NCBI GenBank assembly: GCA_964199315.1
Contig: OZ116710.1
Location: 17,546,001 to 17,610,000, forward strand
Direction of reading: 5' to 3'
DNA: 64,000 nt
DNA from: Orbicella franksi
Taxonomy: Eukaryota
The notes under the pieces are model-generated. The model saw nothing but the letters and a program-made list of their open reading frames with translations. It did not search any database and had not been told where the DNA came from. A program made the translations under genes and the position numbers. This document shows positions 7,280 through 44,737 of this stretch, in pieces. How positions within the stretch are numbered: the stretch's first letter is position 1; each line of letters begins with the position of its first letter.

Positions 7280-7280
7280 G

Positions 7281-12167: not shown

Positions 12168-12683
12168 CTAGATGTGCGACCAGCCGTGATTAGCTCTGTC
12201 TGCCTGGGTGGTGTGAGAACCAGAAGAAATGTTGACCGTTTTCTTCAACATTCAGTTTCCACTCGAAACTCGAGGTCTACATGCATTAAACTTTTTATTG
12301 TCTGGACAATGATATTATACGTTGCACCCCCTATTGGAATACCCTAGCCAGCATAGCTAGTTAAGTTTAAATATTAACTGAGGGACAGAATCAAAGATGG
12401 TTGTCAATTAATTAAGAGCACATGTCCACGAAAATCAAACATGGAGTGGCAAACTTGAAAATTTCAAAATCGCTCAAACTTTGGCTATGAGTAGTCCGTA
12501 TTGAACTATTCGTCGTTATGTGGTTCATTGCCATTTTGAAGAAAACCGCATGCCTGAAGTATGAAGCCAGAAGATATCCATTTGCAATTAGCTTATTCTA
12601 CAACTTATCCAGGTTTCAATTTCCAGGTTGTAATTTATATATGACAGTACATTTGAAAAAAAAATCTGACATTGTGCGAAAGC

Positions 12684-15882: not shown

Positions 15883-18800
15883 ATGACAGATATACCGAGT
15901 CCACTTGCGGTCGCATGGTATCTCGAACCCCGTGGTGTCCAGATTGCTTCAATCTCAATTGGTCGCGTTTTCGACAAAGTTTATTTTCATGGTCTACTAC
16001 TCAAATCCGGTTTAATTATCTGCTCTCGTCGTTCGACTTCTCTCGGGGTTGCTATATTGAAGCAAGTGAAACGAAGAACACACGCGGTTGTCTTGCCGTT
16101 CGATGCAAACGTCCAAATCAGCACTTATTTCGCCCTATGCTGTGATGTCTCGTCAAATCCTGGCCCAGTGGAAAGACAGACGCTACTCAGAACTACTACC
16201 CAGAACATTACTCATGGCAAACGCTCAAGCATGATTGTTCACATCAATACCAGAAGTATACTAAAGCACATGGATGAATTAAGGTTGGTTTTGGTGATGT
16301 TTATCCTTCAATTATCGCAACAACGGAGACCTGGCTGGACGATTCTGTCGCGGACTCTGAAATCTCAATTCTTAACTAATCGTTAGAACGTCTAGACCGA
16401 AGCACAAATCGACGAGGAGGAGGAGTAGCGTTTTATTTACTGGATGGTTTGAAATATAGTCGTCGAAGACTCTTAGAGGCAGAGTCGGAAGCAATTTGGA
16501 TTCAAGCTAAATTATGCAACACTAATTTCTTAATTGGATGCATCTACAGAGCCCCAAACGAATCTCTGGAGGTTTTCAACTACATGGATGATGCGTTGAG
16601 ATATGCTACACGAAATAACCTCGAAGTCATTATCCTAGGTGATTTAAACTGCGATTGCCTTAACACCTCTCTTCAACAAACAACAAGGTTACAGGAATTT
16701 ATGGCCAACGAACTAGCACAGTTGATAAAAGAGCCTTACCGTGTAACACGCAGCACAAAAAGTCTTATTGATGTACTCATCACCTCCACACCCAATTTGT
16801 TTAAAGCTTCCGGCGCTCTGAGCACAACCGTCAGTGACCATTATCCCATTTATGGAATAATGAAATGCCCCGCGGCCCGTCCAACAAAACATCGAATTAT
16901 TAAAACGCAATCATGGAAGGAAAGCAGTATGAAAGACTTTCTCTCTGAATTGGAAAAAAAAACCCTGGAGTTTTCTAGATTGTTTTGACGACATCGACGA
17001 CACGTATTCTGCCTGGGAATCCTTATTCAAGTCTCTTATTGATAGTCACTTCCCTACAAAACTAAAGCGAGTACGAAAACAGACACACCCGTAGCTTGAT
17101 AGTTCTGTTCTTCGACTTATGAGGCAAAGAGATCAGCTACACAAAAAGGCAATTAAACATGGACTGTCCACAGATTGGAATGAGTTCAAACGCCTCCGTA
17201 ACATGGTAACGAGCATTAACAGGAAAAGAAGAAAGAATTTCTTTGCTTACAAACTTGAAGAGAACCGTGGAAATCCAAAAGCGTATTGGAGAACATTGAG
17301 GCAAATTCTACCATCTAAAAGCAAAATATCTGGAACCGAAAAGTTGGTTGTTGACGAAATAGAACTGAATGATGGGCTCGACATAGCCAACTCCTTCAAC
17401 GAATATTTTACAGCGTAGCCTCTACGCTGCTTGAGAACAGACCATCACCTGGCATACAACAACCAGTACCCCAGTCCCAGACTCCATCTAAGATTTTCAG
17501 CCTACCTATTATCAACGAGTGGGACATGTTTAAAGCATTGAGTACTACGAATCACACAAAGGCAACTGGTACAGACAACATTCCAGCCAAAGCTTTGAAG
17601 ATTGCCGCTCCGCATATCAGTATAGTTCTAGCCAAGATCTTCAACCTATCATACAGCACTGGTCACTTCCCCTCCTCTTTTAAAGTGGCTAAAGTAACAC
17701 CTATTTTCAAGGGTGGCTGTAAAACAGAACGCGACAATTACAGATCTATATCAGTGCTTCCGTGCATCTCGAAGATCTTTGAAGCGTTTACGAACAATGC
17801 TCTAACAAACTTTGCACTCGAAGCTGGAATGATAAAACAACATCAGTTTGCCTTTATGAAACACTCGTCAACAACAATCGCCCTCATTAAAGCGGTAGAT
17901 TCATGGAAAATGGCAATTGACAATACCAAGAAAGTTGTATGTGCTTTTCTCGACCTGAGGAAAGCATTTGACACCATTGATCACAACATCCTACTACAGA
18001 AACTTTCAAAACATCTACATGGGAAGGAGTACGAGTGGTTCAGAAGCTACCTATCGGAGAGATCTCAATATGTCAGCTGCAATGGAATTAAGTCTGAACA
18101 GCAACAAATCACCCATGGAGTCCCCCAAGGCTCTGTCTTAGGGCCGACCCTATTTAATATACATATAAACGATATATCCAGTGCTTGTGAAAACAGCCAA
18201 GTCATTCTTTATGCCGATGACACTGAATTTCATGCAAGTTCCAATGATGCTGGTGCTGCTGAACAGTGTGTAACGATGATCTTAATCAAGTAAGCGTTTG
18301 GTTGCGCCGCAACGGTCTCATCAGCAACCATAAAAAGTCCGAGGCCATGCTAGTTGGATCAAGATATTCGGTAGCTAACACTCGTGACTTACAAGTGAAA
18401 CTAGACGGAAAGCTGTTGAAACAAAGTGAACATTGCAAATGTTTAGGTGTATATATGAACAGTTGCCTAACCTGGAATAAGCACATTACGTATATTGCAT
18501 CGAGAGTATGTCCTAAACTCAAAATGTTAAACAGGATCGCGCTCTTTCTTAGCCAAAGAGTTCTACTGAACATTTGTAAACAAACTATATTACCCATCCT
18601 AGATTACGGGTGTATCATATGGGGTGTTTGTGAAAAAAGTAATTCATGACGATTAGAGAGATTACAGAATCAGGCCATGCGTATTATTCTTGCTCCGAAT
18701 CGCAGAACGTGCTCAAAGGATATGCGTAACAGGCTATATCTGTTATCCTTAGATAGTAAGGCGGTGGTTTTTGAAGCTACAATTAGCGTTTAAGATCGTA

Positions 18801-19330
18801 CACAATGTTCACTGTCCGCACCAGTTAGAGGGATATCTTGTTAAGAGGTCTGATCTACATGGAAGAATACTTAAAGACTCAACACTTTTAAACGTCACAC
18901 CATCTAAGACGAAAATGGGTCAGTCTACTTTCAAGTGTGACGCTGCACGAGAATGGAACGGATTACCAAGAGAGATCAGAGAATTAAACACTCTTTCTAA
19001 GTTTAAAACACATATTTTTAAGCATTTTATGGATCAAGACCGTATCAATCATGTATGTACCGTAAATTAGGTTCAAATTTTTGCTTGTCTGTTTGTTGTT
19101 GCTGCTCTTCTTTTTAAATGCTTGTTTTTATATAATCTCCACAATGGTTGTAATTGTTAATGTAAACGTTTACTATATATATCTTCTTGTTTTTTTTGTT
19201 TTAAAGTACAATTTTATGAATAGCAGTATTGTATATGTAAATGCTGATCGCCAGTTAATACCAGTGATCCAGTGATCACTGACTGGCCTTTCAGGTTAAA
19301 TAAAGTCTTTTATTTTATTGATTTATTGAT
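15883..19330 (+). mobile_element. Decayed APE-type non-LTR retrotransposon (CR1/L2-group LINE), left copy
   Basis: Endonuclease motifs (HINTRS, ETWL, IYRAP, LGDLNCD, SDHYPI) and RT motifs (FLDLRKAFDTIDH, GVPQGSVLGP, YADDT). The 3' end reads GGTTAAATAAAG plus a TTTA-rich tail. Multiple frameshifts and stops; 5' boundary uncertain. Confidence 0.93.
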
Positions 19331-19568
19331 TTACGTTTTCGTACAAAATATTCGAACGTACAAAGCAAAGCAAAGCACTTTTCAAGCCTAAACTTTTGGC
19401 CCAGAAATCTAGTATTGCCATTTTCCGCCGAACCAAAAACCACACAGCGATGACGAGTTCAAAATTGACTACTAACGGCCGGGGTTTGAGCAAATTTAGA
19501 TTGTACATTTTCCCGCTAATTTTCGATTTTGCTTGATTCTTGCTGACACTCACTCTTAACGCATCTTA

Positions 19569-19995
19569 TACCCGGGTCTAATGCCATACTTTACATGAGC
19601 CGAACCCAATTTAACCTATTAGGTTCATGTCAAGTTCCGCGTTTGACCCAGTTAAGTTCGACTGATTCTATTTGGAGCCGCTGAGGCGTTCTTCACGCCT
19701 GGCCAGCCGTGAATAACGCCTGAAGACCTACTTTGGGTCAAACGCCGATCTTCACATGAGTCGAACCAAACGCATAATCAAAGGTCTAGGTCTAAAGGTG
19801 TCATTTTAAACTTTACCTTGAAAAACCACTGACCAATTGCAACAAGACCGCTTTTGTTATTTGTTTGGTGTAGCAGTTTTGTTCGACTGAATTAAGTTCA
19901 ACGTTTGACTCAAACAGGCGTTCTTACAATTATTTGAGTCGACCCAAACTGTCATTAGGTTCGGCTCGTGTGAAGTACGGCGTTTGACCCGGGCC
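19569..19995. mobile_element. PIF/Harbinger-like MITE
   Basis: ~36-bp imperfect TIRs (CCCGGGTCTAATGCCATACTTTACATGAGCCGAACC and its inverse), flanked by TTA/TAA, with an internal copy of the TIR motif. Confidence 0.75.
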
Positions 19996-20212
19996 TAACA
20001 GTATCCACCAGACAGTCTTTTTTAACATTTTTTCCCCAAATGTCGTATTTCCAATCTGTCAGAAGAATGTTGAAATTTGAGAAACAAAATTTTATAATAC
20101 CTGCCTTCTCCTAAAAAAGCGGTCCAAATAAAGCTAAGAAAAAGAGAAGGCAGAATACATCCAGGACCTTCTTGTCATGGAGATTAACACGGGAAAGCCT
20201 AAGTTCTAAGTT

Positions 20213-22519
20213 CTAGCTTGTTGGCGCGATGCCTATTATTAAGTTTGCGTCGCTTGATTATTGGCGCTGCATGTTTATCAGCCGCGACTTAATTGTCACC
20301 TGATTTCTTCAAAAATAGTTATTTTCCTAAACGGCTTAGGCAAACTTCCTCGTTATTGTTCAAATGGCTTGAAAATTTATAAGTAATAAGAAGGCAGGAG
20401 ATAATTCAAATTTAGTAACGAAAATCGAGAATTCTCCCCTAGCACAGGTGAATCCTCCCATTCAAACGGAGCAATGGAAAGAGCTTCCGATGAAATCTCA
20501 TGAGAAGAATTTATCACATACTGACATAAGATTGAGGTTTACTGTACATAACTTAACAATATATTAGTGAACAAAATACCTCAAAATTAAGAGTGATTGT
20601 TCATGTCGGTTGTAGTACAATGTTTGAGTTTCGTAATCGTTATAAAGGCGACTTTTAACGTACGTTTAAATTTTGGAAAATTGAACGAAAATTTGCAATA
20701 AACATTTCCTGCAGTAACACAGGCGAGTATCTGAGAAGCCAAATAAATGATGAAATCCGTGAAGAGTTCAGTTTTCATGATTAAAATACTGAAATTTTCG
20801 CCCGAATTATAACAGGAAATAACATATTTTGTTCATTATCTCAGCCATTCAAAACAGTTTAATCTTTATAATCTGCCTTAAACCTTTTCCCTTTCTTTAG
20901 AGCAGGTGACTGGAGACAAATGCCATCAACATCACTTATTTTGTTAATCGATGTTTAATTCCGGTGATACAAAAGGAGGGAAGTATGGAAAAGCACATGC
21001 CAAGTCCAGAATTAAAAAGAAATGAAATGGTCAAATTTCAGTACCAAAGATAATAATAAGCTAAAAAGCATTCTGTATTTGTGGGTCACTACTTGGCGAA
21101 AGGTCTCTAAGTCTAAATTAATATCATTATTGTTGTTGTTGTTATCAAAATCATATGAATGAGAGTGTAATTAAGGATTTACAGTACGAGTGATATTTCG
21201 AAAATTCTCAGCCTTTAGGAGAGCGCAATTTAAGAGAATTTTTTAAATATAAATTGAAAATGAAAATCGTAACCATTCAATAAATACAGCCAAGAAAAAT
21301 TACAACAAAAATTGTTTGGAAAGGAAAAAATATACGGCTAAAAGCGTGTATAATTCCGGTCTGATATGCCTACATCTGGACTGTGAAGAACCCATCTTTA
21401 GAAAATGCTGGTTGAATTTTATCCTGCTTATCAAGATGAAAGGGTTTCCTCGTGCTGGTTTTGAAATAGAAGTACTTAAAGCTAAAGTCAAGTGTTGTTT
21501 AGTAGCTACTGTTGTCATGGTAACCTATTGTGTCACGAAAATGATAACAGCGTTTTCAGCAATGATTAGACAGTGTTTTGATACCATGATTGTAGCATCA
21601 ACTGATGAAGAGTGGTTATAATGACTCATCAAATTATTAGTCTTGGAAAGTGCTGGAAACTGTTTTGAGCTACCTTAAATCCACGCTAAAGTTATAACTG
21701 ACGTGTTGCGCGAGAACGAAGCAATAAATCACGAGAAATACGAAAAGAGGAAACGTTGACACAAAAACGAAATATGTTTCTCCGTCAAACATGTGCCAAG
21801 TCTTCCGTTTTTTCTTTTGTTTTATTATTACTGTTATTTTTTTTTAAAAAAAAACCTGTGTTTGTTTGTAACCTTCAAACATTTCCATCTGCTTTAAGGA
21901 TCAAATAAACAAAATTTAAGTACTTAGTTTAAATAAGTGACTAATTCCTTTGGAATATTATAATTCTTAATCATTTTTTAAGTGACAACTGACAACGAGT
22001 TACCAAAGACTATTTTAGCTCATAAATGCCGTAAATTTTATAAAAGGCTTCTTATCACTTCTTTTCATCAAATTTAACGGTAAAGCTCACAGGAAGCACA
22101 ACAATGGCCCTTGATTTTCCGATTTTTTGCTGTTGTGTCACACCTATTTCGTTAAATGTACACAGCAAGCTTTGACACTAGCTCTGAATCAGTTCGGCCC
22201 AAGTTTTTTGAGGCATAAACTTTTTATGAAGCTGTAGTTTGTTATTTGCGTTCTTAGACCAGGCTGATTCTTATTCAAAACATTCGATAAGGTTATGATT
22301 ACATTGAAATGATTACAAAGGATTTCCTTTTAATGACGACTTTTAATTATGCGGCCAGGACAAAAACGAGGAAGTGACCGCGAGTCGTTGAAAGGAACTC
22401 ATAAAGTCTGTGCATGAAATCCCGCGGTTTCATAATCAATCGCTACTGATAAACGTACAGTTCCAAGTACTGAAACAGTTTGGTAAGAAATCGAGCGAGG
22501 AAACGAAGTCTTAAGCAAC
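20213..22519. repeat. Paralogous copy of the A/B intergenic region upstream of GPCR C1, lacking any type A coding sequence
   Basis: Aligns to 7281-10138 (roughly 80-85% by eye, with indels). Homology begins at CTAG, 2 nt upstream of the type A ATG. Confidence 0.85.
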
Positions 22520-24404
22520 ATGAGTGGTTCTAATAGCGCTTCTAAAAGTTTTGGTCCTAGTTTCACAGCGTCCCAGCCAAGTACCGTCTTTATTGCTTTA
22601 CAAACCGCAGTTCTGAGCCCCACGTTCATAGCAAGCTTCCTCGGTAACATTTCTGTTTGCCTGGTTATTTGTGGCACGCGTTCCCTCCGACAAAGACCAA
22701 GCAGCTCTATTTTGGCCAGCTTAGCAATGTCTGACTTCTCCTTGCTGTCGTTTAATTTCTTCTCTCCCGTTTGATTTGGCTGTACGATTTTGAAGCAGCA
22801 AACAAAGCCTGCGAACATTTTCTACTGCTGTTTGGAGTACTCTTGTACGTCAGCATTGGTCATATTTGTCTTCTCAGTTGCAATCGTTACATTGTTGTCA
22901 TATATCCTCTGAGGTACACTGAAATTGTCACCAGAAGACGCGTTACGTTAACCTTGTTGGTTGCCTGGGTTGTTCCTGTGATTTCCATGGTTGTCATTCC
23001 CCTGTTTTATGTTGACAGTGACAGCACTCAGTTTAAAACAAGCATCATAGGTTGCTCTGAGTTCACAAGCGAACATCTCTTGATGCACAAAGTTCATGTT
23101 TTCAACAGCACCCTGTTCGTGGTAATTCCATTTGTGGTGACGATTTTCGTCTATGGCCATATCGCCAAAATCTCATGGTCTCAGAGCAGCCGAGTTCAGC
23201 CTGGCGAAAACTTGAACCCCAAAACTGCCGACTTAACGAGAAGGAAGCCAAAAGAGATGAAATGGATGAAGACAACAGGTAACTAGAGCCTTATTAACCC
23301 TAATAATACACGTCAAATTAATTTTGCTAGTAATTTGAGTTCATTTTATCAACTTTACTTTAGTCCAGATAGCCATTCATTACTTTTCATCTGAATCACT
23401 TGTAACGTATGTATGGTGATAACACATCACGTTCTTCTAGAATTAACCAAGAGCCCCATGCGTCATCTCCTGTCACATACAAGTAGTTGGAGACCCCGTC
23501 AGTACACTAATCACGTGATACAAACACAATGCACCATTTTAATAACCGAAAAAAGCTGTTGTTACGTGAGCTACAAATTTGGGTTCGATGGTGAGAACAA
23601 GGAAGCATATTTTTTTTCAGATGATCATGAAATATGGCTTGTTTTAACTTTGTCAGTGAATAGCCTGGAAAAATCCTGAAAGAGTCTCTGATTCAAAAGG
23701 AACAAACCCTCAAGTATCGCCCATATACATGCAGCGCCATCTTCAGTGCTTTTTTTTTTTGCGGTTTTGAATGATTAGCATGGTATTCTTTGATAATCAT
23801 TTGAAATTCATTAAGAGTGTGGGCCGAAAAATAACATCTATCAGAATGATCAATTACCAGACAGGTGTGACTTTAAAAAATAGCTACTCAGAATGAGACA
23901 CAATGATATAGACCTCAAATAATTTTGGTCGAGAGTAAGGATTTGTTTTCTTCCAGACTTCCTCGATCCTGACCTAAGTTATATTTTTTAACCTGGTTTT
24001 GGTTTTTGTGTTTGCTTTTTTCAGTTATCGCGATCGGTGCGTTCACCTTGTCCTATCTCCCAGGATTCATCTGTATATTGCTCACGGTAAAACTTGGGCC
24101 CAGTCGAGTCCCCGACGCACTCCGCCATTCCGCCATCGTGTTGACGGCAATAAACAGCGCCCTCAACGCAATTATTTACATGTTCAGATCCAACGAGTTC
24201 AGAATCGCCTTCAAGAAATTATTCAGAGGTAGTTCGATTTCTCCGCTGCCAAGTGAAAGCAAAAAGAAAGCCCTTGCTGCTCGGTCACCTCTGGAAGTTT
24301 CCACGTGCAACCAACATGGTCGTCAGCCTTCATTTCCAACTGTTCCAACTGGAGATGTGAGAGCCTTACGTTGTCGTTTACCGGCAAGCTCCAGCGGTGA
24401 TTAG
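22520..24404 (+). pseudogene. Orphan class A GPCR copy C1, frameshifted and probably chimeric. Exons 22520-23278 and 24025-24404
   Basis: Net +5 nt at ~22754-22767 gives a stop after 84 aa. Also DRY>NRY, NP>NA in TM7, a 1-codon deletion, and a ~50-nt deletion removing the ancestral stop. Confidence 0.88.
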
Positions 24405-24581
24405 TTCTGTCTGCCTGGGTGGTGTTAGAACCAGAGGAAATATTGACCGTGTTCTCCAAAATTCAGTTTCCACTCGAAACTCGACCTCTACATGCATTAA
24501 AATTTTTATTGTCTGGACAATAATTTTATACGTGGCACCCCCTATTGGAATACCGTAGCCACCGTAGCTAGTTAAGTTTAA

Positions 24582-24869
24582 TTAGGAAAAAGCCACAAGA
24601 AAATACGCGCGCTGATTGGTTAAAAAATCGTGTTTCTATAACTCGATGGAAACACAGAATTAGCACGAGCTGTTGAAGTAATAATGGCGCGAGCAAAGAG
24701 AATTCACATTTTGATGATCAACGTAAACACGCTGTTTTTCTTTTTTGTCGTCAAGGTGTTTTCTAAAAGAAATAGAAAACATGTTCTCCATGTTTCTATC
24801 GACTTATAGAAACACTCGTGAAAGTTTGGGAGAATTGGAAAAAACTGTGGAAACAATCGCCTGCAGTTC

Positions 24870-24900
<31 letters not shown>

Positions 24901-24954
24901 TTTCCACTCGTGTTTCTATAACTCGATAGAAACACGGTAAATGTTTGCTATTCC
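24582..24954. mobile_element. ~370-bp MITE-like insertion
   Basis: Absent from the paralogous flank (12361-12380 ttaagtttaaatattaactg). TTAA on both sides and terminal GGAA(A/T)AGC inverted motifs; exact ends are ambiguous by a few nt. Confidence 0.6.
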
Positions 24955-25753
24955 TTAAATATTAACTGTGGGGCAGAATAAAGGGAATGAATGAGTTGCC
25001 AGTAATCGGATACCCGTGTTATGCGCAAAGGACTCCGGGATCGTCAGGGGGCAAGTCGCTAGATGAAAATGTATAGCGAAAAGTTGTTTCTACATCCAAA
25101 AAACGATTTTGGGGAGAGACCAATGCTTTTTCGCCGTTGTTTTATCGCAAATGGATTTGGGCAATGTTGATACATGGAAAATGTAAGTTTTGTTTGAATA
25201 ACCGTGAAATAAGTGATAAAATCTACCGATCAGTTTTTATGATGAGATCAGTTTTCATGATTTTGCGCCTAAATTATAACAGGAAATAGCATATTTTGTT
25301 CACTCTCTCAGCCATTCAAGACAGTTTAATCTTTATAATCTGTCTTGAGCCTTTTTTCTTTTTTTTTTCAAAACAGGAGACTAGAGACAAATGCTGTTAA
25401 TATCACTTATTTTGTTAATCGATGTTTAATTCCAGCGTCACAAAGAGAGGGAAGTATGGAAAAGCGCATGCCAAGTTCAGAATTAACAAAAATATTCAAT
25501 GAAATTTCAGTTTTAATGCCCAAAATTCAGTACCAAAAAGAACCAGAAATTTATAGGCTCGATAGCATTGTGTTTCCAAGTTTAAATTGATATTTATCAC
25601 AAGATTACGATCTGAGAGAGCACATACCCAGTGCATGGCCTCGTCCCATGATAATGTTTCTCAATGTTAATTTAGCACTTGGTCATACTGCGAGGCTGGT
25701 TTAGGAAAGACATGTGTTGGCCAAAACTGATTGGCTAAATGACGTAAAAAATA

Positions 25754-26300
25754 CCGTAGGTCCTCGAATTTGTGCCCGGGGCGCTAATTTCAAATCTAGG
25801 AGAAGACGGGGGCACTGATTCGCCGTTTTAAAGCGAGGGTGGGGGAGGGGGGAGAGAGGACGCTTATTTAATTTTTCCCAAATCGTGGTCAGATATGATC
25901 GGGGTATTTTTTTTGTAATAAATGTGTGTGTCAGTCTCTTAGAAGGATCCTGTCTCTTTTGGAGAACTACGTGATATAACACCTTTGACCAGTCTAGTCA
26001 TGCTGCACAAGGTTGGCTGGGCTTCAGTCAGTGAATCAGTAGATCGTCAGTATCATCCGTTGCAATGGTCAATTCGTAGTGCTTGAATGAGTCGATAATG
26101 ATTTGCTCGTGATTGCTCGTGATTGGACACGACCAAAACTATACATCTTTTGTTGTTTCAGTAACTCTTGCATAAAACAAGGGGAGGAGAGGGCGCGCCT
26201 ATTCGAGGGGAGGCGCTTATTTTAAATTTTGGCCGATAGAGGGGTCGCTTATTCCAAGGGGCGCTTATTTGAAGGGAGACACAAATTCGAGGATTCATGG
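25754..26300. mobile_element. Degenerate Tc1/mariner-like MITE
   Basis: TA|CCGTAGGTCCTCGAATTTGTG ... CACAAATTCGAGGATTCATGG imperfect TIRs, with internal GGCGCTTATT repeats. Confidence 0.55.
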
Positions 26301-26719
26301 TGCCCAAAAAACTTTCGCCTGGATTTTCGGAGCGCAATTTGTAAGGAAAGAGGAGCATAACATGTCCGGCGCTTTTAAAGAACTTTCCAAAGAGATATTT
26401 TTCGCTTTAATCCGTTAAGTACTCTTCGTGAAACTACTTTCGAGCGGGTTAGAATACAATTCCTGTCAGCTGCCAGTGCGCCTCATGTGAACCAGTCATG
26501 CAGAGAAATGACAAGACTTATTTTCGAAGTCAACATAGGATAAGCACATAAAAGATAATTTTCCTGCCGAGTGCTTTGAAAATGCTTTCCAAAGAGACCT
26601 CTATCGCGATCCAAACGGTGCGGTAGTTCCGGGGAAGCAGCTTTTTTTTCGCCGTGGACTTGCAAACCTTGGTAAATATTACACAGCACTTTCGAAGTTA
26701 AATATGCAAACATTTGCCC

Positions 26720-27030
26720 TCAGTGTAGTGCTCTACCAACTGAGCTGTCAAGCCAACTGGGAGCTGGTCACGTTGTGAATTCGTAATATACCCGTAGATG
26801 GTGACGAATACAAGTGAAGCCATGATTGATTATCGTGGCCAACTCCCAGATGAGCACTGTACTGATATCGATCTAGAGGTCATGGGTTCGAATCCCGTTC
26901 AAACCTGAATTTTTTCCAGGCTTCTAATTTCACAACTACTTAAGTTGTTTGTATAACTGCGATGATCAATCTTGTCCTCATATCATTCTCCGCAGTTCAA
27001 ATACGTGATCCTTCTATCATATTCACTTGA
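26720..27030. mobile_element. tRNA-derived SINE-like repeat
   Basis: A-box-like AGCTCAGTTGGTAGAGCAC on the minus strand (~26728-26746) and B-box-like GGTTCGAATCCC on the plus strand (~26886-26897). No complete cloverleaf. Confidence 0.6.
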
Positions 27031-27501
27031 ATACAAGTCTTGGCGCTGTGCCGGTAATCATTCGTGCAAGGGAATGATAAGACTACTATTTTAACTTCGG
27101 AGAAACACGTGTAAGATATTTTTCCTTCCCAGCGCTTTGAAAATGATTTCCAATGCAAACAGTATGGTATTAAAAAAAAGATTTTATTTCTCTGTTAACC
27201 GGTTAGATTTCTACTTTCGGATTTAAATGGACGCGACCCGAATGACTGTTGGGCATTGGCTGCGCAATCATGGGACCGAGTCTAATATACCTTTCACAGC
27301 GTAACGCGAAGATTAAAATAGATTGGAAAAGATTATCATAGACACGGGAATTTGTTCTCTCAGGATCATAATCTCTGGTATTAATACTGTTGTTGTTACT
27401 ATTGTCATATAAATTGTGGGGTTTTCAGCAGATTGCTTTGTTTTCGAGATGAGGCGTTTTGGAATTTGAGATTTGGAATTTTATCCTCGTATCTTCAGAA
27501 T

Positions 27502-30432
27502 TTAAGCCTGTGGAGGTAGTACTTCTTCCACATAAATCCGGGACACTGAGTTCCAACCCGTGTACGCGTCAGCAGATCCTTGACTGGCACAGTTACCAAC
27601 CCAGAATCCCACGCGGACAGTGCCCTTGGCGATGTTCTCACACACTCCTTCGATGTGGCGAGGGCGGTGTAAATCTTTCTTGCCACCATTTCCGTGTACC
27701 ATATAGACCACGCCATCAATCGCCTCTGGACCTGAGCACTCAGCTCCGTTGAAGGTAAAATACCATCGTCTGCAGCAGGCATGGCAGTTATAGATGCGAA
27801 GATTGCCACTCCAGAAGACGCGCAGGCTTGTTTGGTCTGACGCTTTGTTGAAAAGACATTCCTGCAAAAATTAATTGAACGGGAAATTTTGAACAGGAAG
27901 GGTGACCATGGGACGTTAAAATATAAGTTCAAATCTCTGAAAGAAAACGTTTCTTCAGCTCGGCCTGGATTCATAGCAGTACTTTTATCGACGTCTACCT
28001 TGTTAACGAGTATAACATGGCACGGTCATGTTTAGACACGAGATATTGTAATGGAAGCGTTGTAACTCGCTCTATGCTGCATATTTGTTAGTTAATTTCA
28101 GCTTAAAGGCAGTTGTAATGCATCATGGTATCTGTGCTATGGAATTATAAGAGTCCAAACTATGGCATAAGACCAAATTAACTTTTAAAGGCCCTTTCTT
28201 ACATACCTACGAATAAATACAATCTGTGACAAACGAGGGTCACAAGAAAATAGCTTCCGAATTAATTTTAATGCTTTTGCTAGGCTGTGAAAGCGCCTAC
28301 AGAAGAGTATATTACTCTATATTTCACGACCAAGATGAAGGGCCGCCTGCACCTCTTCCAAGCCGTTAAATTGAATCGAGACTTTTCAGTTCAGTCATCT
28401 GTCTCACTAAACATATCTCACTGAAAAGGTCAAAATACAGTTGGCGAAGATAAAAATATTAAAACAAACTCGAAAAAAAAACCAAACCCTTCAAGAATAA
28501 GAAATTCAAGTTTAGGTGCTGACGTGTTTCTTAGCAAGGAGTTCACTGGCAGCATACCAGTAACGCAATGTAGTCAAATGAGGTTGCCACAGTGCTATCC
28601 CTGTAGGAGACGTGTGCTAGTGTGATAGTTCGTTGGACCCCACTTGAAGCGGTCTAGGCTAGAAACCTCTTTTAAAAACTGGTGCTGCTGTGCTGTTAAG
28701 AAACGTGACAAACTGCAGGTTGGGGGAAAAAGGGGTTAATTTGCGAGGGGCCAGAGAGCTGAACAAGTACATTGTGTAATGGGTAAAAATGTCACACGAG
28801 ATAGCCGAAAGAATGGTAAGTGTAACATTTACCTTGATCAATCCAGTATCCTTCCCGTCGTTAATATTTTTCCAAACACACTGTTTCCAGTTACTTGTCA
28901 GCGTCCCTGGAAGTCCCTGGGGGCCTGGAGGGCCTTGACTTCCTGGTTTGCCATCATAGCCTTGGTCTCCACGTTGTCCCATGGGTCCTTGCGGGCCGAG
29001 CGACCCCCCAGCACCTGCTGGTCCGGCGGGACCCGGGCTGCCAGGGATACCTGGGATTCCTGGTGCGCCACAACAGCAACTTTGACCGCAAGTCGGTTGA
29101 ATTTCCTTAATGTAGAAAGCAAAATGAGCATTTGTTAGCTCATAAAAGTTGCTTTGGAACACAGAACGGATACATCTATTCTTCCATTCTTTCCGAATGG
29201 TCTTTGACCTCTTTGGTAGACTGCGAGACTGAATTTTTGATACGAAAAAAAATATTAAGAGTTTCCTTTTATTACATTCATAATTACAGCCATAACAAGA
29301 AATTGAGCATCGGATGGGTTAATTAGACGTCTGTGGTCAAACCTAGCAGAAAGATTTCACAGGAGCGTTTAGAGTGAAGAGGTTGGTAACAATAATAGAT
29401 ATGTCATAATATTTACTTTGATTTTAAAAATCATTTCTATTTACACGGCTAAAAAAGTTAAAAGTAAAAAACCGAACGTTTTCGACACTAGGTGATTTTC
29501 AGATATCATGCACTTACTAAAGAAGAAGGGGAGTGTGACGCGGTCACTTAAGGGCGCGTTCCTCAGTACGGAGGGTTGATCATCCCAAGGGACACACATC
29601 AATTCGGTTTTGGTCATATTTAGAGTCAGTTTGCTTCCTATCAGCAAATTGTGAGCATTTTCTAAATCTTGATTTAGATGCAACTGAACATTGTCTGCAC
29701 TATCCCCTGCATATGTAAGATTGTTGTCATCAGCGTACATCCTCGGTTCACAATTTGACAGACAGTTTGGAAGATCATTGATATATAATAGAAATAGTAG
29801 TGGCCCCGCAATCCTCCCCTGGGGGACGTAACAACTTAATGAACAACTTTTAGAGAGCGACGGGTTGATGGGGTACATTTGAGTACCATTCTCTAAATAT
29901 GACTGAAACCATTTGTGCGCGTTTCCATATATGCCGTGGTCTCTTAATTTTGACAAGAGGATCTCGTGGTCAGCTGTGGCGAAGACCTTTTTTTAGGTCT
30001 AAGAAAACAACGCATTGATTTTACCGCGGTCAATGTTGTACGCCCACGTGTCCGTGGCCTCAAGGAGAGGCGAGACAGTTGAGTGTATAGCACGAAAATC
30101 CGATTGATATTTATAGATGATGTCATGCTCTTCTATGTAGGCGTATAATAATTATTGACCATAGACGATTCCTTCAAAGACCTTGGCCACAACTGAGATC
30201 ACTTATGTTATCTTATCTTATTTTATCTTATCTTACCTTTTTAATCAGCCTGATTTTAAGTATTAGGGATTGATTTATACTGACTAGCTTTTTAATGTAA
30301 TCAACTCACTTTGTCTTGACTTGAACTTGCACTTGATTTGCTGTCTGCTGTGGCGCAGAAAGCGATCAGCGGTAAAACGAGTAAACTCAACATGGTGTGG
30401 GAAATGTTCATTTGACTTTGATATGATGGCAT
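27502..30432 (-). CDS. CTHRC1: CTHRC1-like secreted short collagen, complete, 251 aa. Coding exons 30310-30432, 28833-29105, 27502-27861
   Basis: Signal peptide, CGQSCCC, 19 Gly-X-Y triplets, then NWKQCVW...ECLFNK...[10 protein letters not shown]...[17 protein letters not shown]...[13 protein letters not shown], which matches the CTHRC1 C-terminal domain. Both introns are phase-0 GT-AG; 123+273+360 nt. Confidence 0.92.
29590..30150 (-). mobile_element. Degenerate LINE RT fragment (duplicate of 766-1345)
   Basis: KWFQSYL, VPQG, YINDLP and MYADD motifs in ORF 29441-29956. Confidence 0.85.
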
Positions 30433-31778: not shown

Positions 31779-32543
31779 TAGTACCACAGTATGTGGCTGT
31801 GTGCAGAAATTTGCAAATTCTCCATGGGTAATTAACTTGATATCTTTTTATATAACACCAACATAAAAAGAAATAAGAAGATGTTGACTATTCCTGAAAA
31901 TTGTTTGTTTGAAAATGATCCTCAGTCAAGCGAAAGTTTCCGGTCATTTTCCGAAAAATTCCAAAGATTCCTCGAAGATTTAGGAGAGACATTTATAATT
32001 GTGTTCGACTATTACTGTTCAGTTTATTCATTAGGTTAAAAGAGACTGTCGGACAGACATTGGAAAATGTTTCGACTAACAGTGTTTCATTACTTGGCAA
32101 TCGTTATTTCATCGTAAAATTGTCAGCGGTAAAAGTCTGCATCACAGTTTGTATGACAAAATCAGTCGTGGCTTACAGTCTGGTGATGTGCGACTTATGA
32201 CCTCGGTTCTTCATTTTGGTTTTGACTTACAATGTAGAAAAGGACATTTGTGAGATTAGTTTCTTTTGTCATTTAGTCGAGTCGTAAAGACTGGTTTTCA
32301 TGTGATCTTTACGGTAGCTACAAAAAAAAGTCGAGGCAACCCACTTGACGTGAAAACTTCGTTTTTGTTCTAGAGGAAAAGGTTCTTACGTGTGTGTAGT
32401 TTCCAGTATTCAAGCGTGTACCGTACAAAGTCATCCGATACATAATGTGGGTTAGCGGTTATCAAGAAATACCTTCAATTCATCATTTACTGAGCAAAGC
32501 AAAACAAAGTTACTGCATTTAAGTTCATCGGTTAAGTGCCTAC

Positions 32544-32604
32544 CTTGCAGCTGTGGTTGTGGAAGAAAATACTCACAATTTGAAGAACGTTTTAGCTTTA
32601 TATA
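32544..32604 (-). promoter_or_regulatory. Candidate TATA box and non-coding first exon, right CTHRC1-like copy
   Basis: TATATAAA and the CAAG|GTAGGC donor are conserved with 3744-3804. Confidence 0.4.
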
Positions 32605-33855
32605 TCCAGTTTCTGGAAAACACCAGTGTCATGTTTCTAAAATATTAAAGTTATCTCTTGGTCTGTTCCGGTTTGAAAGGGTACAGGTTAAGACATGTTT
32701 GAAAGTTGAGCACGTTCCCCCAAAAATTATCACAACAAAACAACAACAACAACAAATTTGTAAACTATTCTACAGTGTTGAGGAAACATATCAAACACCG
32801 GAGACAAGGTTTTATCACATTCCTGAACACCGAAAAAAAGTTGAAAATAGGACGTGCAGCACAGTGGAGTATTTTTGACGAACTTCGGACTTCGGCACGA
32901 CCTTCGACACGTTCTGCTCCTCACCACGAAGATCCAATTAACACATTGTCCTTGAAGTTTGCTGAGGTTCATGATTGTTTCTTTGTGATCTATCGAAACA
33001 GCAATTCACGCTCTTAACACGTGGATATATTTGTACGTGCGCTATAAATTACCCAGCGTTAAACACCTGATTAGCTGCGTGTAGTGTTGTTTGTATAAGG
33101 ACTGCCACATGATTCATTCATGTGAAAAGGATTTTGTTAACACCTATAAATCCTCAGTTCAGCCTGACTGACATTTATTACGGTTAATTTATTTAGCCCA
33201 AAGCACAGCTATTGAATGTAATGCCTTCTAGTACAACGAATAATTACAAAAGAGACTGCAAAATTACAAACGAGATGACTCTGAGAAGACAATTTTAATA
33301 AATGTTAAAATCTTCGATTACATATGTGCACAGTTAATCAATCAGCTTTAATGTACTGGTAATTTTGTAATATATTGAGGACCTTTGTAATCCCTAAACA
33401 ATTTGAGGGCTTTTTTATGCGCTCAAAACCAGTCCGTTCAGCAACAACCTTACACAATTTAGCGATCCAGCAAACGTACGTGGACAATTTTCGTTTTCTT
33501 TTTGTTACTATTTGAGACAATTCGATTGCTTCTGGAATAAAGTACATCCCCGAGGGTTTCCACCGACTGCCTTGATAATTAGTCTAGCGTCCGTTCTCCT
33601 GGTTAAGATTCTCGTCAGATAAATCTTGTCTAAAAGTTTCAATGTTTGAATCCACCACCACTTCCGTAATTGAAGTCTGGTGTGTCCCAGGCTCCCAATT
33701 TGTAAAGGTAGTCGGGCGTTTTGCAGCGAGCGGAAGCTGGTCCTTTCGGCCTATCTCTCCTCCCAGTTCTCATTCCACTCATTGTCTTCCCCTTCGTCGC
33801 CATCATTCGCGCTACGAATCCGATCTTGGTCTACGTGCTTCTGCGACCGTTGCAC

Positions 33856-36091
33856 TCACAACTGGGACACCGATAAACGACGCAGATCATGTCGCACTCC
33901 GCACTTGGATGCATCCAGGCTGGTCTCGCCAATACGCGTGGTGGCGGTGCGGCTGGGCTCAACCGAAGCACCTCTGAAAAGGTTTCTGAAGGCGCGCTTG
34001 AATTCGTTCAACCTGAGCATGTAAATGATCGGGTTTAGAGCGCTGTTTACTCCCAACATCACAATAACGGCAGAGCGGATTGCATCGGGTACTCCACTGG
34101 GACCGAGTTTGACGGTGAGCAGGACATAGACCACCGCTGGGACATAGCAAAGCACAAACGCTCCAATCACCATTACTGTAAGAAAAAAAAAGAGAAATTA
34201 AAAAGATATCTATATTAACTACTAGAAATGGCACGATGGTGAACGTTCACTGATCTTAGCTGGTCTAGGGGACGCCACACCCTTCGTATCATCACACTAG
34301 CAGCATAACCTACAGAAATATACAGGGTTTACTGCAATACGAACCAGTGGGAGGAAGAGCCGATAGACTGGAGCGTAACGAAAAGTGAAAGAGAAAAAAT
34401 AATGTGGTTGGCCCTTATATCTACAATCATGAGCAAAAATATCGGGCAAATTTACACTTGTGGCGCTTTCTCACGTAAAACAAACAGTCGCGGGCGAATT
34501 CAACTACACTTGCTCACCCCCTCACCGTGCTCGTAAGTTTTCCTGTCCTGTCATTTATATTGGATGGCGGACAGGGACATGGCAAGGCATTTCAAAAAGG
34601 ATTTTTCCAACTTCAGTCTGCATGTTGTAAAACACAGATAACAAATGGCAATACAACAGCGGTCAAGGCTCGAGCCTTGGCCGGGGACAGTGTGCTGTTT
34701 CTTGGTCAAGACACTATTCTCTCACATTGTCTCTTCTCATCCCGGTGCTTAAATCAGTTCCAGAAAATTTAATGCTAAGAGGTAACCCTGGGATGTACCA
34801 GCATACGACTGTTCGAGCACTGTTCGCGCGTTCGAGCCAAGTGGCCTGATGGGCCACTTGGCTTGAATGCCGACTTCACCTTAACCTTACCCTTGGGTGT
34901 AATCAAGTGTCGTGAGCTCAAAATCATCTCCCACAGTGCAGGCGCGTACAATTGCGACACGAAAAAAGAAAAAAAGAAAAAAAAAAAAAAAAAAGGCCGT
35001 AAAAAACAAAGGTCGACAAACCTTGACAAGGAACAATACTGGCCCTAGTAATAATTTTTATCTACGCTTCCGCGGGAGAGTGTTAATATTATTTTTAATT
35101 TGCTATCACACACACGATGTCCGTTTCATAAAATAGGCATTTGTAGCTCACGCGTTTGACTATGCTATTGGTTTCTTTTAGTCCTAAACATAGAATTTCC
35201 TGGTTAAAATGCGCATTTAATGTATTTTCTGTCAGTCCTGTCAGTGACCTAATTGGATAAAATCTCAATATGCTTCGGAAACTAAATTACTATAGTAAAG
35301 GGAAACAAAATTTAAACTATCAATCTCTTGCTACCTATTGTCTTCATCCATTTCATCTCTTTCCTCCTCCTTCTTCTCATGTCAGCTATCTCAGGATTCA
35401 GGTTTTCGCCAGGCTCAACTCGGTTGCTCTGAAACCAAGAGATCTTAGCGATGTGGCCGTAGACGAATATCAGCACCGCAAAAGGAATCGCATCGAACAG
35501 AGTGATGTTGAAGACAAGATGGACTTTGTGCAACAAGCCAGGTTCACTAGTGGACTCTGAGCAACCTAAGATGCTTGTTCTAAACTGAGTGCTGTCACTG
35601 TCGACATAAAACAGGGGCAATACCACCATGGAAACCACAGGAGCACCCCAGGCTACTAACAAGGCTAGTTTTACGCGTGTTCTGGTGACAATTTCGGTGT
35701 ACCTCAGAGGGCAAAGGATAGCTATGTAGCGATCGCAACTGAGTAGACAAATGTGAGCAATATCGACGTGCACGAGTGTTGCTTGTATGATTACGAAATG
35801 CTCGCACAATTTGGACACAGCCTCAAAGTCGTAGAGCCAGATCAAGCGAAAGAGAAGACACGACAGCCAGGAGAAGTCAGACATTGCTAAGCTGGCCAGA
35901 ATATAACTGTCTGGTTTTTGACGGAGGCTTCTCACGCGCCAAATGGCCAAGCAAACACAGATGTTACCAACCAAGTTTGCTATGACAGTGGGGCCTAGAA
36001 CTGCAGTTTGCAAGGCTGTGGATACCATACTCGGAGACGACACAGTGAAGCTCCCGCCAGAATGTCGAGACCCGTCAAACGAATCGCCCAT
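33856..36091 (-). CDS. Orphan class A GPCR type A, copy A2, intact, 358 aa. Exons 35335-36091 and 33856-34175
   Basis: 757+320 nt, phase-1 GT-AG intron. Motifs: GN, LAMSD, C3.25, DRY, CYVP, NSALNPIIY. Confidence 0.92.
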
Positions 36092-38945
36092 GCTGGTTTG
36101 TTGGCTCGATGCCTCACAAGTTTGCGTCGCTTGATTACTGGCGCTGCATGTTTATGAGCGGCGATGAAATTTTCACCTCACTTCTTTACAAATAGTTCTT
36201 TCCTTAAATGGTTTAGATAAACTTCCTCGTTATTGTTCGAGCGGCTTGCAAATTTTTAAGTAATAACAAGGCCGGAAAATAATATTCAAATCCAGAAACG
36301 AAAACCGAGAATTCTCCTAGTACGAATCGACCGTTTACGAAACAATCCTCTTGTTTAAACAAAGGAATGGAAAGAGCTTCCGATGAAATCTCACGAGAAG
36401 AGTTTATCACATACTAACAAGGTTATTTAACAATATAAGTGGACAAAATACCCGAAAATTAAGAGAGATTCTTCAGGTCGCTCGCAGTACAATGTTTGTT
36501 TTCGTAATAGTTATAAAGGCGACTTTTAACGTGTGTTTAAATTTTGAAACTTGAACGCAAAACTGCAATAAACATTTCCCGAAGTAACACAGGGGAGTAT
36601 ATGGAAAGCCAAATAAATGATGAAATCCGTTAAGAGTTCAGTTTTCATGATTAAAATACCGAAATTGCCGCCCAATTTTAACAGGAAATAACATACTTTG
36701 TTTATTATCGCAGCCATTCAAAACAGTTTAATCTTTATAATCTGCCTTGAACTTTTTTCTTTTCTTTGAAACAGGTGACTATAGACAAATGCTATTAACA
36801 TCACTTATTTTGTTAATCGACATTTAAATCCAGTGATACAAAGGGAGGGAAGTGTGGAAAAGCACATGCCAAGTCCAGAATTTTTTTTAATGAAATTTCA
36901 GTTTAAATGGTCAAATTTCAGTACCAAAAGTAACAAGAAATTAAAGAGCATACTGTATTTGGAGAGCCTTCCTTGGCGAAAGGTGTCCAAGTTTTAATTA
37001 GTATTATTATTATTGTTGTCGTTATCAATATCATATGAAAGCGAGAGCAATTAAGGATTTTACGGTACGAGTGATATTTCGAAAATTCTTAGCCCAGTTT
37101 AGGCGAGTGTAATTTGAAAGAATTTCTTAAATATAAATTAAAAATAAAAATCGTAACCACATTCAATAAAAAATTATTCTCTTTAAGTTGGACAATTTTT
37201 AAAAAAATTGTTCGGAAGGGATAAAAGATGTAGCTGAAATCGGGCACAAAAGCCGTTGCTCAAGGATAAAATTTGTTATTGTATTTGGAGAAATGTTTCA
37301 CTACACTGGTATCGTAGTGAACGAGCGAGCCGTGAACATTATGTGACTGCGCGTCAGCGTCAGAACAAAAAACATCCAATGAAACGACTTACTTCGACCT
37401 TTCCGTGTGCTACTTGTGTTTCCGTGCCGTTTGAAAGCGATTCTAATGAGTTATAGTTTCACTTTTTACATCTCTCTACATACAGAAAGGAAAACAGTGA
37501 GCATATATTGAACAATTATGACGTTACGTCTTTGCGTTACTTTTACATTTCAACCCTTCTCTTTGCTTATCAAAAAACATGACGAACGACTTTCTCTTTA
37601 AAAGTGCACCCACTCAAGCAGGTGCAACTAATAAAACATTAGGAAATTTCCTTCAAGCTAAGTTCGACAGCGAACTTAATGTTCCATTTTGTCCTAAACG
37701 AGCACGGTGATCTCCACTTTATAATGCATAAATTTAAGTCACATGTGGTTGACTACGGATATACTGCGACTTAAAGAAAAGTTTGAAATTCTGGTTTGAT
37801 ATACTTATATTTGGATGCTTTGAAAAACGCAACTTTAGAAGATGCTGGTTGAATATTATTCTGCTCATCAAAATTCGTTTTTAAAATAGAAGTACTTAAA
37901 GCTAAAGTTATGGGTGTTTTAGTGGCTACTGTTCTCATGGTAACCTTCGTGTCACGAAAATGATAACAGCGTTTTCACCAACGATTGGACAGTCTTGATA
38001 CCATGATTGTAGCATCAACTGATAAAGAGTGGTGATATTGGTTCATCAAAATCTAAGTCTTGGAAAGTGCTGGAAACTGTTTTGAGCCACCTTAAATTGA
38101 CACCAAAGTTACAACTCACGTGTTGCGCGAAGACGAAGTAATAAATCACGAGAAATACGATAAGAGGAAACGGTGACACAAACGAAAAAGGTGTCTCCGT
38201 CACACATGTGTCAAGTCCTCCGTTTTTTCCCTTTGTTTTATTATTACTGTTATTTTTGAAAAAAACCTACGTTTCTTTGTAACCTTCACACCTTTCCACC
38301 TGCTTTAATTAAGGATAAAATAAACAAAATTTAAGTACTTAGTTTAAATAAGTGAATAAAGTTTTCATTCATTTGGAATATTTTAATTCCCAAACCTTTT
38401 TTAAGTGACAATTGACAAGGAGTTATCGAAGACTATTTTAGCTAAGAAATGCTATACATTTTATAAAAAGTCCCTCATAAAACTTCTTTTCGTCAAATTT
38501 AAAGGTAAAGCCTACAGGAAGCATTACAATGGCCCTTAATTTTCCGCCGTTTTCTGTTGCTGTGTCAAACCTATTTCGTTAAATGTACACACAAGCTTTG
38601 ACACTAGTTCTGAATCAGTTCAGTCCAAGTTTTGAGGCATAAACTTTTTAGGAAGCTGTAGCTTGGTATTTGCGTTCTTAGATCAGGCTGATTTCTTGTT
38701 CAAAACATTAGGTTATGATTGCATTGAAATAATTACAAAGGATTTCCTTTTAGAGACGACTTTAAATATACGGCAAGGACAAAAACGAGGAAACGAACTC
38801 GAGTCGCTGAAAAAAAAAAAAAAAACGTATAAATCGAACGTATATACCCGGAACTGTACGTTTATCAATCGCCACTAATAAACATGCAGTTCCGCCTGCA
38901 ACAGTTTGGTAAGAAATCGACCGAGGAAACGAAGTCTTAAACAAC

Positions 38946-40963: not shown

Positions 40964-41472
40964 CTAGATGTGCGACCAGCCGTGATTAGCTATGTCTGCC
41001 TGGGTGGTGTTAGAACCAGAGGAAATGTTGACCGTGGTCTTCAACATTCAGTTTCCACTCGAAACTCGAGGTCTACATGCATTAAACTTTTTATTGTCTG
41101 GACAATGATATTATACGTTGCACCCCCTATTGGAATACCCTAGCCAGCATAGCTAGTTAAGTTTAAATATTAACTGAGGGACAGAATCAAAGATGGTTGT
41201 CAATTAATTAAGAGCACATGTCCACGAAAATCAAACATGGAGTGGCAAACTTGAAAATTTCAAAATCGCTCAAACTTTGGCTATGAGTAGTCCGTATTGA
41301 ACTATTCATCGCTATGTGGTTCATTGCCATTTTGAAGAAAACCGCATGCCTGAAGTATGAAGCCAGAAGATATCCATTTGCAATTAGCTTATTCTACAAC
41401 TTATCCAGGTTTCAATTTCCAGGTTGTAATTTATATGACATTTGAAAAAAAAATCTGACATTGTGCGAAAGC

Positions 41473-42098
41473 TAGGGGTGGCGAACGGTAAATGCTAGAC
41501 TTTGCGAGACGGCGAGACAAGCGTTTTTCGTTGCGAGCCCGAGATGTTTTGACATTTAAGATTGCGAGACCGAGACTTCAAAGTGTTTTGAGTGCGGGCG
41601 CGAGACGTTCAGACTCTTAAACTTTGAGCCCCAGATTTAGTTGAGAGCAAGAATGAGCTTGTACAGCCTTACGCCAGCTTCTTGGAACTGACTGGAACTG
41701 GAAATTCGATTATAACACACTACGTTATGATATCCTAGACAAAAGTGACTGTTTTTCTGGCGCCAAAACGGACGTTGCGGTAGGTTTTGTACCTTTTTGT
41801 GGAAGTAAGGTAATTAGGAGAAGTTAGGATTAACTTTTTCTCGGAAAATTTGTAAGCTGCTCCATTGAAACTCCATATCAAGTGAAGAGAAGACGTCATT
41901 TATAAAAACAGATAAATGAACGATTTGGGACTTCGAGACCCTTAGCCTTGCGAAAAATCGAGACTCAGAGACAGCTTCCTAGAAAAAACGAGACTGCGAG
42001 ACGCACATAACCGCTAAAAAACGAGACTGCGAGACCCGTGAAATTCGACTAAAATTTTATGAGGCCCAGAGCTTTTGAAGGACCATTCGCCACTCCTG
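41473..42098. mobile_element. hAT-like MITE (duplicate of 12684-13309)
   Basis: Same TIRs and GCGAGAC repeats. Confidence 0.6.
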
Positions 42099-44217: not shown

Positions 44218-44737
44218 TAACAGTGCTTTTATTTGGTTAATGATTATGTTATTGCTGATAAAGTGCACGGGTTCCCTGTGCTTTGGGCGTGCGAGAGGAT
44301 TTTCATAAACGCAAATTGAATGGGAGCTTTAAAGCTGCCCACGGACCAAAAATTAAGCTTGTTCTTTTGTTTTTTTAAGCGGTGATGCATTGGTGATGTC
44401 AAACCCTTTGGTGTGCGATTTTGTGTTTTTCACGCTACGGTGTTCGGTAAAATAAAGTTATCTGCGGTGCTGTGGTTTCTTGTTTGACCTTTCTCAGACC
44501 TAAATTCAGCATCCAAACTTCGTTAATCTGTGCTAATCTATGACAAGCACACTGTCTAGTTAAACTTCGATATGCTTCAGCTGCCAGTCCGAAGCTGTTT
44601 TCATTAATACATAACTTGACAAGTAACTTCACCTCTGCCACGATGCAATTGGAGCTGGACCGAATTTATTATTGCTGCGTAGCATTTTCGATTTACCCTG
44701 CAATTAACCATGATTTAGGTCGGTAACCAAGGTTGAG

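Follow-up and report, generated by a model that had tools for sequence, protein, structure and literature searches.

The window analysed here is a 64,000-nucleotide stretch of the genome of the coral Orbicella franksi (G000:C13:17546001-17610000, contig OZ116710.1, in a 497-Mb assembly), and the element in question is C1, a G-protein-coupled receptor (GPCR) gene remnant beginning at position 22520, together with the tandem array in which it lies. Positions are counted from the start of the window, with negative coordinates lying to the left of it; flanks of 60 kb (left) and 20 kb (right) were added, and the resulting 144 kb was compared with itself. The protein of B1, a neighbouring gene of the same family, matches Pfam 7tm_1 (PF00001) over residues 42-304 (E=3.8e-41, 141.7 bits against a cut-off of 30.5), C1 can be aligned to B1 along its whole length, and the closest named proteins are GPCRs of scleractinian corals (Oculina, Desmophyllum, Pocillopora, Montipora). 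On sequence similarity, the family at the locus is rhodopsin-like (class A), Pfam 7tm_1; its genes have two exons and a phase-1 intron. The initial annotation of this DNA had counted six genes, where the 144 kb in fact holds eleven members of the family plus fragments:

A-type genes, minus strand: about -47059 (truncated), -33586 (A0), -4656 (A'), 6514 (A1) and 35325 (A2)
B-type genes, plus strand: -29960 (B0), 10139 (B1) and 38946 (B2)
C-type genes, plus strand: -17509 (C0), 22520 (C1) and 53135 (C2)
10139-12167, plus strand: B1, an intact 384-amino-acid rhodopsin-like GPCR, representing the putative donor lineage of the 3' half of C1
38946-40963, plus strand: B2, intact, 384 amino acids
53135-55028, plus strand: C2, intact, 387 amino acids, the sole intact gene of the C lineage and the relative of the 5' half of C1

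B0 is also intact, at 384 amino acids. The genes are arranged as an array of at least three 29-kb units and one partial unit. With F denoting the segment at 25.2-28.8 kb, a and b the next two (b carrying the A gene), and c the segment with the B gene and a large transposon, the order is F-1 a0 b0 c0 C0, then the partial F0 a' b', then F' a1 b1 c1 C1, and finally F1 a2 b2 c2 C2.

C1 is a patchwork. Its parts, as judged from a MAFFT alignment of C0, C1, C2, B0, B1 and B2 and from Jukes-Cantor (JC) distances, are as follows, TM denoting a transmembrane helix and ECL2 the second extracellular loop:

21277-22519, plus strand: upstream region of C1, C-lineage type, 6.6% from C2 and 17.3% from B (JC)
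22520-23278, plus strand: what is left of exon 1, 759 nt long where intact B and C2 have 757 nt; the frame is broken
22672-22941, plus strand: switch zone, with the last C-type site at 22937 and B-type runs from 22941; the three lineages are 5.5-6.7% apart here
22941-23278, plus strand: TM4-ECL2-TM5 part of exon 1, B-lineage type by DNA tree and protein tree
23279-24024, plus strand: intron, B-lineage type, 6.8-7.1% from B (JC); the C2 intron is unalignable
24025-24404, plus strand: what is left of exon 2 (TM6-TM7-tail), with 53 bp deleted after 24390 in both C0 and C1

C1 is C-like from 21300 to about 22940 and B-like from 22941 to the end of the homology at 24988. Over the upstream region (21300-22519) it lies 6.6+/-0.8% from C2 and 17.3% from B1, with C2 and B1 17.8% apart; in exon 1 from 22941 to 23278 the corresponding figures are 20.3% to C2, 7.1% to B1 and 16.7% between C2 and B1. 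The intron is 6.8% from that of B1 (the full range of C1-B values being 6.8-7.1%) and about 58% from that of C2, which amounts to being unalignable; exon 2 is 8.9% from B1 and 12.8% from C2; and the 3' flank at 24391-24581 is 9.5% from B1 and 44% from C2. At individual sites, C1 agrees with C2, and with none of the three B copies, at 22554-5, 22573, 22609, 22627, 22929 and 22937, and from 22941 onward it agrees with B and not with C2. The maximum chi-square test for a recombination breakpoint, applied to 554 informative sites, gives a chi2 of 273 (permutation p<=0.0005), and leaving out the intron and the unalignable flank still gives 89.5 (p<=0.0002). All of the copies lie in one genome and neutral partitions should be clock-like, so the conflict between their sister relations requires an exchange. 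One switch, between the last C-type site at 22937 and the first B-type run at 22941, explains the pattern of sites, with sites of the "wrong" type occurring at about the rate expected of lineage-private changes; the stretch 22672-22940 is uninformative, since B, C2 and C0/C1 are there mutually only 5.5-6.7% apart. A small B-like patch also lies within the upstream region, at 21790-21950. C1 is a C/B recombinant. The initial annotation's description of a C2-like 5' part and a B-like 3' part is borne out by the site states, the JC distances and the maximum chi-square breakpoint test alike; its estimate of about 90% identity to B was somewhat low (the actual value is about 93%), and the C-to-B transition does lie inside the gene, as had been proposed, though the exact switch can now be put at 22937-22941, with 22672-22940 uninformative.

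Of the partition trees, that of the DNA at 22941-23278, with an A-type outgroup, places C0, C1 and B in one clade at 96/95; the 5' coding part, for which the initial annotation had also foreseen a tree, is taken up below. A protein tree that includes B- and C-type relatives from other assemblies places C0/C1 within the B-type clade (100/98 and 97/90) and C2 in a separate C-type clade (95/89). This arrangement indicates that the split between B and C is old, and that the species' own B lineage gave rise recently to the 3' half of C0/C1.

Two further observations concern the intact genes. In the 5' coding sequence (22520-22940, compared with 10139-10560 and 53135-53555), B and C2 are 5.5-6.9% apart, as against 17-55% outside it (upstream region, TM4-5, intron, flank), which suggests an older homogenisation of the 5' coding sequence between B and C. 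The TM4-ECL2-TM5 region of C2 (53500-53700), for its part, sits on a long branch (0.12) with a ratio of nonsynonymous to synonymous substitution (dN/dS) of about 0.6, and several of its residues are shared with A-type genes against B; the ligand-facing loop is strongly different between the intact B and C receptors.

C1 has a near-identical twin. C0 (G000:C13:17528371-17530978) lies 40.03 kb upstream of it, is 97% identical across 2.6 kb (range 96-99%), and has the same mosaic profile. The two also share lesions, to which C1 adds some of its own:

22751-22755, plus strand: 5-bp insertion causing a frameshift, in C0 and C1, absent from C2 and B0-B2
22772-22774, plus strand: premature TGA at codon 85, brought into frame by the insertion, read from the open reading frame 22520-22774 and its translation
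22882-22897, plus strand: four clustered substitutions, all inside 16 bp and peculiar to C1, by which DRY becomes NRY

The exon 1 ATG and GT donor of C1 are conserved with B and C2; exon 1 nevertheless ends out of phase and NPIVY has become NAIIY, so that C1 has no intact frame carrying both DRY and NPxxY. The 5-bp insertion is no slip of assembly, since public run X16, which is independent, has a contig (record 12) that covers 22706-22935 gap-free. Private to C1, besides the substitution cluster, is a 3-bp deletion near 23097; private to C0 are a TAG at codon 131 and two indels (5 bp inserted, 1 bp deleted). A donor for the DRY-to-NRY cluster was sought throughout the 144 kb and was not found; in public runs X1 and X16 only the DRY form is present. 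The lesions mark both C0 and C1 as pseudogenes; C1 had been treated as a gene in the initial annotation, and the frameshift, the codon-85 stop and the 53-bp deletion do not allow it to be regarded as intact. The dN/dS between C0 and C1 is 0.55, compared with 0.1-0.3 among the B copies, which suggests relaxed constraint, though the counts are too small to carry weight. The contigs of the public runs are short unitigs giving no usable depth; they confirm continuity across 22914-23019 and 25174-25296, and among these short unitigs there is no spliced joint of the 23278/25025 type. Contigs from an RNA library run unspliced across both borders of the C1 intron.

Beyond the gene lie the last of its B-like sequence and the start of the next unit:

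24582-24961, no strand assigned: repeat of about 380 bp resembling a miniature inverted-repeat transposable element (MITE), a simple insertion within the C0 and C1 3' flanks
24962-24988, plus strand: last B-like 3' flank, 27 bp, matching B1 12371-12396; the homology ends there
24989-25206, no strand assigned: filler of 218 bp, identical in C0, by which the gene block is physically joined to the unit that follows
25207-28778, plus strand: start of unit 2, a truncated copy of the A-B intergenic element (the x tail) followed by segment F1

The homology between C1 and B runs to 24581, is interrupted by the MITE-like repeat (which contains an inverted repeat and occurs at least 40 times in the genome, at 88-91%), and resumes directly after it; B-like sequence thereby extends about 115 bp past the point, near 24492, at which the alignment of C2 with B ceases, and continues up to the junction. 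A search of the x copies and of the tails of B and C2 found no homologue of the 218-bp filler, parts of which look repetitive in the public runs. After the filler, the truncated A-B intergenic element begins at about its position 520, followed by segment F, and contigs from runs X1 and X3 bridge 25174-25296. Over 24400-25600, junction included, C0 and C1 are 99.2% identical; the unit join must therefore lie 3' of the gene and predate the split of C0 from C1. C1 had been taken to mark the junction of a 28.8-kb duplication, whereas the physical join is outside it, at 24989-25206.

The divergences among the copies fall into layers. In JC terms, C0/C1 differ from C2 by 6.2-6.6% upstream and from B by 6.8-7.1% in the intron, while C0 and C1 differ from each other by 1.4-4.0% and B0, B1 and B2 by 1.7-2.8%. 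Over most of the repeat the units are about 1-3% apart, in long tracts pairing -36557 to -3028 with 3573-36942, -56 to 21276 with 28779-50129, and -36558 to -18758 with 32375-50129. Unit 2 differs from units 0 and 1 by about 2% before 18470, from where the divergence rises gradually to reach 4-6.4% over 18470-22960. The other edge is older still: F' and F1 differ by 7-12% (9-12% in the left 2 kb of F'), and a1 differs from a2 by 4-9% over its first 1.1 kb. With the halves of the chimera 6.4-7.0% from their donors, the centre of the repeat at about 2% and its edges at 4-12%, the recombinant must predate the young duplications, both of its halves being some 6.5-7% from the donors when most of the repeat is at about 2%. 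By these distances, the chimera is similar in age to the old edges of the repeat.

An apparently sharp step in identity at 21276/50129 was considered as a boundary in its own right and set aside, as a transposon that entered unit 2 recently accounts for the break and the divergence climbs gradually from about 18470:

50130-51873, no strand assigned: transposon of 1.745 kb bounded by terminal inverted repeats, inserted upstream of C2 in unit 2 and in no other unit

This element, whose terminal inverted repeats measure about 100 bp, occurs at least 40 times in the genome, and several copies on other chromosomes reach 98-99% identity; it has been active recently. Attempts were also made to find one order of unequal crossovers that would yield the present array, and every scheme with a single event gives one segment the wrong age (either F' together with the initial 1.1 kb of a1, or F-1 a0); the layers are accordingly reported in place of a history.

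The A-type genes and the left end of the array add some detail. A1 (5050-7300, minus strand) has frame breaks in both exons, while exon 1 is open in A0, A2 and A'; it is probably a pseudogene likewise. Another A-type fragment lies further left, at G000:C13 17491910-17492067, and the leftmost unit contains a local tandem duplication of about 1.55 kb, 93% identical, at -45432 to -42809.

The initial annotation had explained C1 by an unequal crossover between C and a B-like paralogue, B', which would also have created the duplication, and had predicted that B' would be found 4.4-6.3 kb to the left of the window, followed by a copy of 25000-28835. At the place in question there is instead an A-type gene on the minus strand, 3.9-6.1 kb to the left. 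When the whole genome was searched with 22941-24575, the B-like half of C1, only C0, B0-B2, C2, A copies and one small A-type fragment came up, and no B'. The copy of the downstream sequence does exist, in that 25228-28662 is matched at -3338 to -61, but it differs by 7-12% substitutions (BLAST identity 83-90%) and not by about 2-3%; the copy of F that matches at 1-2% is the one following C0, 40 kb upstream. Where a crossover would have left the parental 3' donor, at the distance of one repeat period and with matching sequence downstream of it, there stand an A-type gene and the 7-12% diverged F'. By the refuting condition that the initial annotation had set for itself, the prediction fails. 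What stands of the crossover interpretation is that C1 is a C/B recombinant and that the C-likeness of unit 1 to unit 2 stops within the gene; the chimera itself is older than the bulk of the repeat.

We think it probable that C0 and C1 are near-identical copies of a single C/B recombinant that was already inactivated when it was copied, and that this recombinant is older than the young duplication and not its scar. The recombinant would have come about once, from a C-type and a B-type gene, through non-allelic homologous recombination. The promoter and the first 140 or so codons would derive from the C lineage, of which C2 is the only intact member, and the part from TM4 to the tail, with the intron and the 3' flank, from the B lineage of the same array; the switch at 22937-22941 would have fallen inside the 5' coding stretch in which B and C are most alike. 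The chimera, its frameshift and 53-bp deletion, the MITE and the 3' junction would then have been copied together when the unit was re-duplicated. As to the kind of exchange, we lean slightly toward one of crossover type over long-tract gene conversion, on account of the single visible switch and the B-like sequence that reaches to the very end of the homology. In either case it would be an ordinary product of non-allelic recombination in a tandem array of coral rhodopsin-like GPCR genes, with no new mechanism involved.

Several results weigh against this reading. The tree of the 5' coding part, taken from coding sequence only and with A-type outgroups, is an unresolved three-way split; the diagnostic bases that the initial annotation had listed there are indeed shared with C2, but 22520-22670 alone cannot separate the hypotheses by the approximately unbiased (AU) test (p=0.42), and the AU test is borderline (p=0.058) for the 338-bp 3' partition of exon 1 alone. 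With the coding partitions weak in this way, the case for a mosaic is carried by the distances in non-coding sequence, by the intron and by the protein tree that includes relatives from other assemblies, and the C2-likeness of C1 mainly by the 1.2 kb upstream. Secondly, the edges between units 1 and 2 (4-6.4%, and 7-12% for F' and F1) are much older than the centre, so that the original duplication could be as old as the chimera, which would fit the linkage in time supposed by the initial annotation. Lastly, the tracts at about 2% could in principle, or in part, be a false duplication derived from haplotypes, the public data consisting of short unitigs; a simple artefact of assembly is argued against by the differences in structure between the units (C0/C1 as opposed to C2, the transposon present only in unit 2, and the partial unit).

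Among the alternatives, interlocus gene conversion survives best, and we regard it as possible but not likely: the 3' part of a C duplicate (TM4, intron and exon 2) would have been overwritten from the B gene 12.4 kb upstream. The donor is near and in the same orientation, no B' is needed, and the recipient sits in the C position with C-type sequence upstream; that these paralogues do exchange is suggested by the homogenised look of B and C2 in the 5' coding sequence (5.5-6.9% as against 17-55% elsewhere), and the small B-like patch at 21790-21950 also speaks for conversion. The tract, however, would have to be at least 1.7 kb long and to span a 745-bp intron without homology between C and B, and its B-like sequence goes on for about 115 bp past 24492 or so, as far as the junction, with no visible distal homology in which it could have been resolved. 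Only the proximal boundary can be seen, the filler starting after 24988, so that recipient-type sequence does not flank the tract on both sides, and the equal age of the two halves would have to be a coincidence.

It is unlikely, in our judgement, that the model of the initial annotation can be rescued by a later loss. Here a C x B' unequal crossover would have made both the chimera and the duplication of about 28.8 kb, B' would then have been deleted (for example between two x-tail repeats, leaving A'-x'-F'), the centre would have been homogenised to about 2%, and the unit re-duplicated to give C0. Such a course would account for the single switch, for a B-like flank that reaches the junction, for the equal age of the halves (6.4% and 7.0%), for edges of units 1 and 2 that are 4-8% diverged and so near the age of the chimera, and for a gene of the family followed by a copy of F at the predicted distance. 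That gene, though, is A-type and on the opposite strand, there is no B' anywhere in the assembly, and the left 2 kb of F', 9-12% from F1, is older than the chimera. An "empty" A-x-F arrangement occurs also at -47091 to -45503, in a contiguous alignment at 88.5%, which suggests that A-x-F predates the chimera; and the model needs an extra unobserved deletion together with homogenisation and re-duplication.

That there was no recombination at all, but only unequal rates (a fast C2 in TM4-ECL2-TM5, for instance, or a fast B in the promoter), is highly improbable: C2 does have a long branch (0.12) in the 3' exon 1 tree, with a dN/dS of 0.6 there, but the neutral partitions conflict under a clock (C0/C1 and C2 6.4% apart upstream and both about 17% from B; C0/C1 7% from B in the intron, where C2 is unalignable), B and C0/C1 share derived residues in TM4-5 against A and C2, and the pattern of distances already effectively refutes it.

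For the annotation of this genome, C0 and C1, and probably A1 too, should be treated as pseudogenes, and what had been called a 28.8-kb duplication as an array of more than three units, the copy number of which may vary and the assembly of which may be hard. More broadly, the locus provides a worked example of how tandem GPCR arrays of corals grow and diverge: a recombinant paralogue, its death and re-duplication, transposon insertions that date the steps, and homogenised tracts of many kilobases. Noel et al. 2023 (PMC10236652) found the rhodopsin-like GPCR domain to be the commonest among the gene families amplified in corals (34 of 192 orthogroups), kept in tandem arrays, and judged gene conversion to be very rare in such arrays. 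The present locus differs in having a recombinant paralogue, and tracts of 17-33 kb at about 2% beside segments at 7-12%; it is a local counter-example to that rarity and not a new mechanism. A bolder view is that the array keeps an old unequal crossover of the haemoglobin Lepore type, its B' parent since lost, which founded the unit of about 29 kb and was followed by homogenisation over large tracts and by re-duplication. We hold this to be doubtful; were it true, concerted evolution by non-allelic exchange would be active in at least some coral GPCR arrays, contrary to the published view.

Three well-known systems, compared here from general knowledge, resemble the locus in part. Haemoglobins Lepore and anti-Lepore are the products of delta-beta fusion genes formed by unequal crossover between tandem paralogues. 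C0/C1 are like them in being hybrids with one switch, formed from adjacent paralogues in the same orientation, and the single switch point between parental types that characterises such genes is found at 22937-22941; as in anti-Lepore, the hybrid stands between retained parental genes, C0/C1 lying between B and the next unit. They differ in that the reciprocal architecture to be expected is missing here, with no parental B' upstream and no B-type sequence after the hybrid, and in that the hybrid is a pseudogene that has been re-duplicated.

The RCCX module of the human major histocompatibility complex (CYP21A2/CYP21A1P, C4A/C4B, TNXB/TNXA) consists of tandem modules of about 30 kb, variable in number. 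Like the coral array, it couples an active gene with a dead paralogue, and its chimeric genes arise both by gene conversion and by unequal crossover. It belongs to another organism and involves another gene family, and no disease or functional consequence is known for the coral locus. Closest in the kind of gene involved are the red and green opsins OPN1LW and OPN1MW, head-to-tail paralogues of the rhodopsin class of GPCRs that swap segments by non-allelic homologous recombination. The opsin hybrids are usually functional and shift spectral tuning, whereas C0 and C1 have been inactivated.

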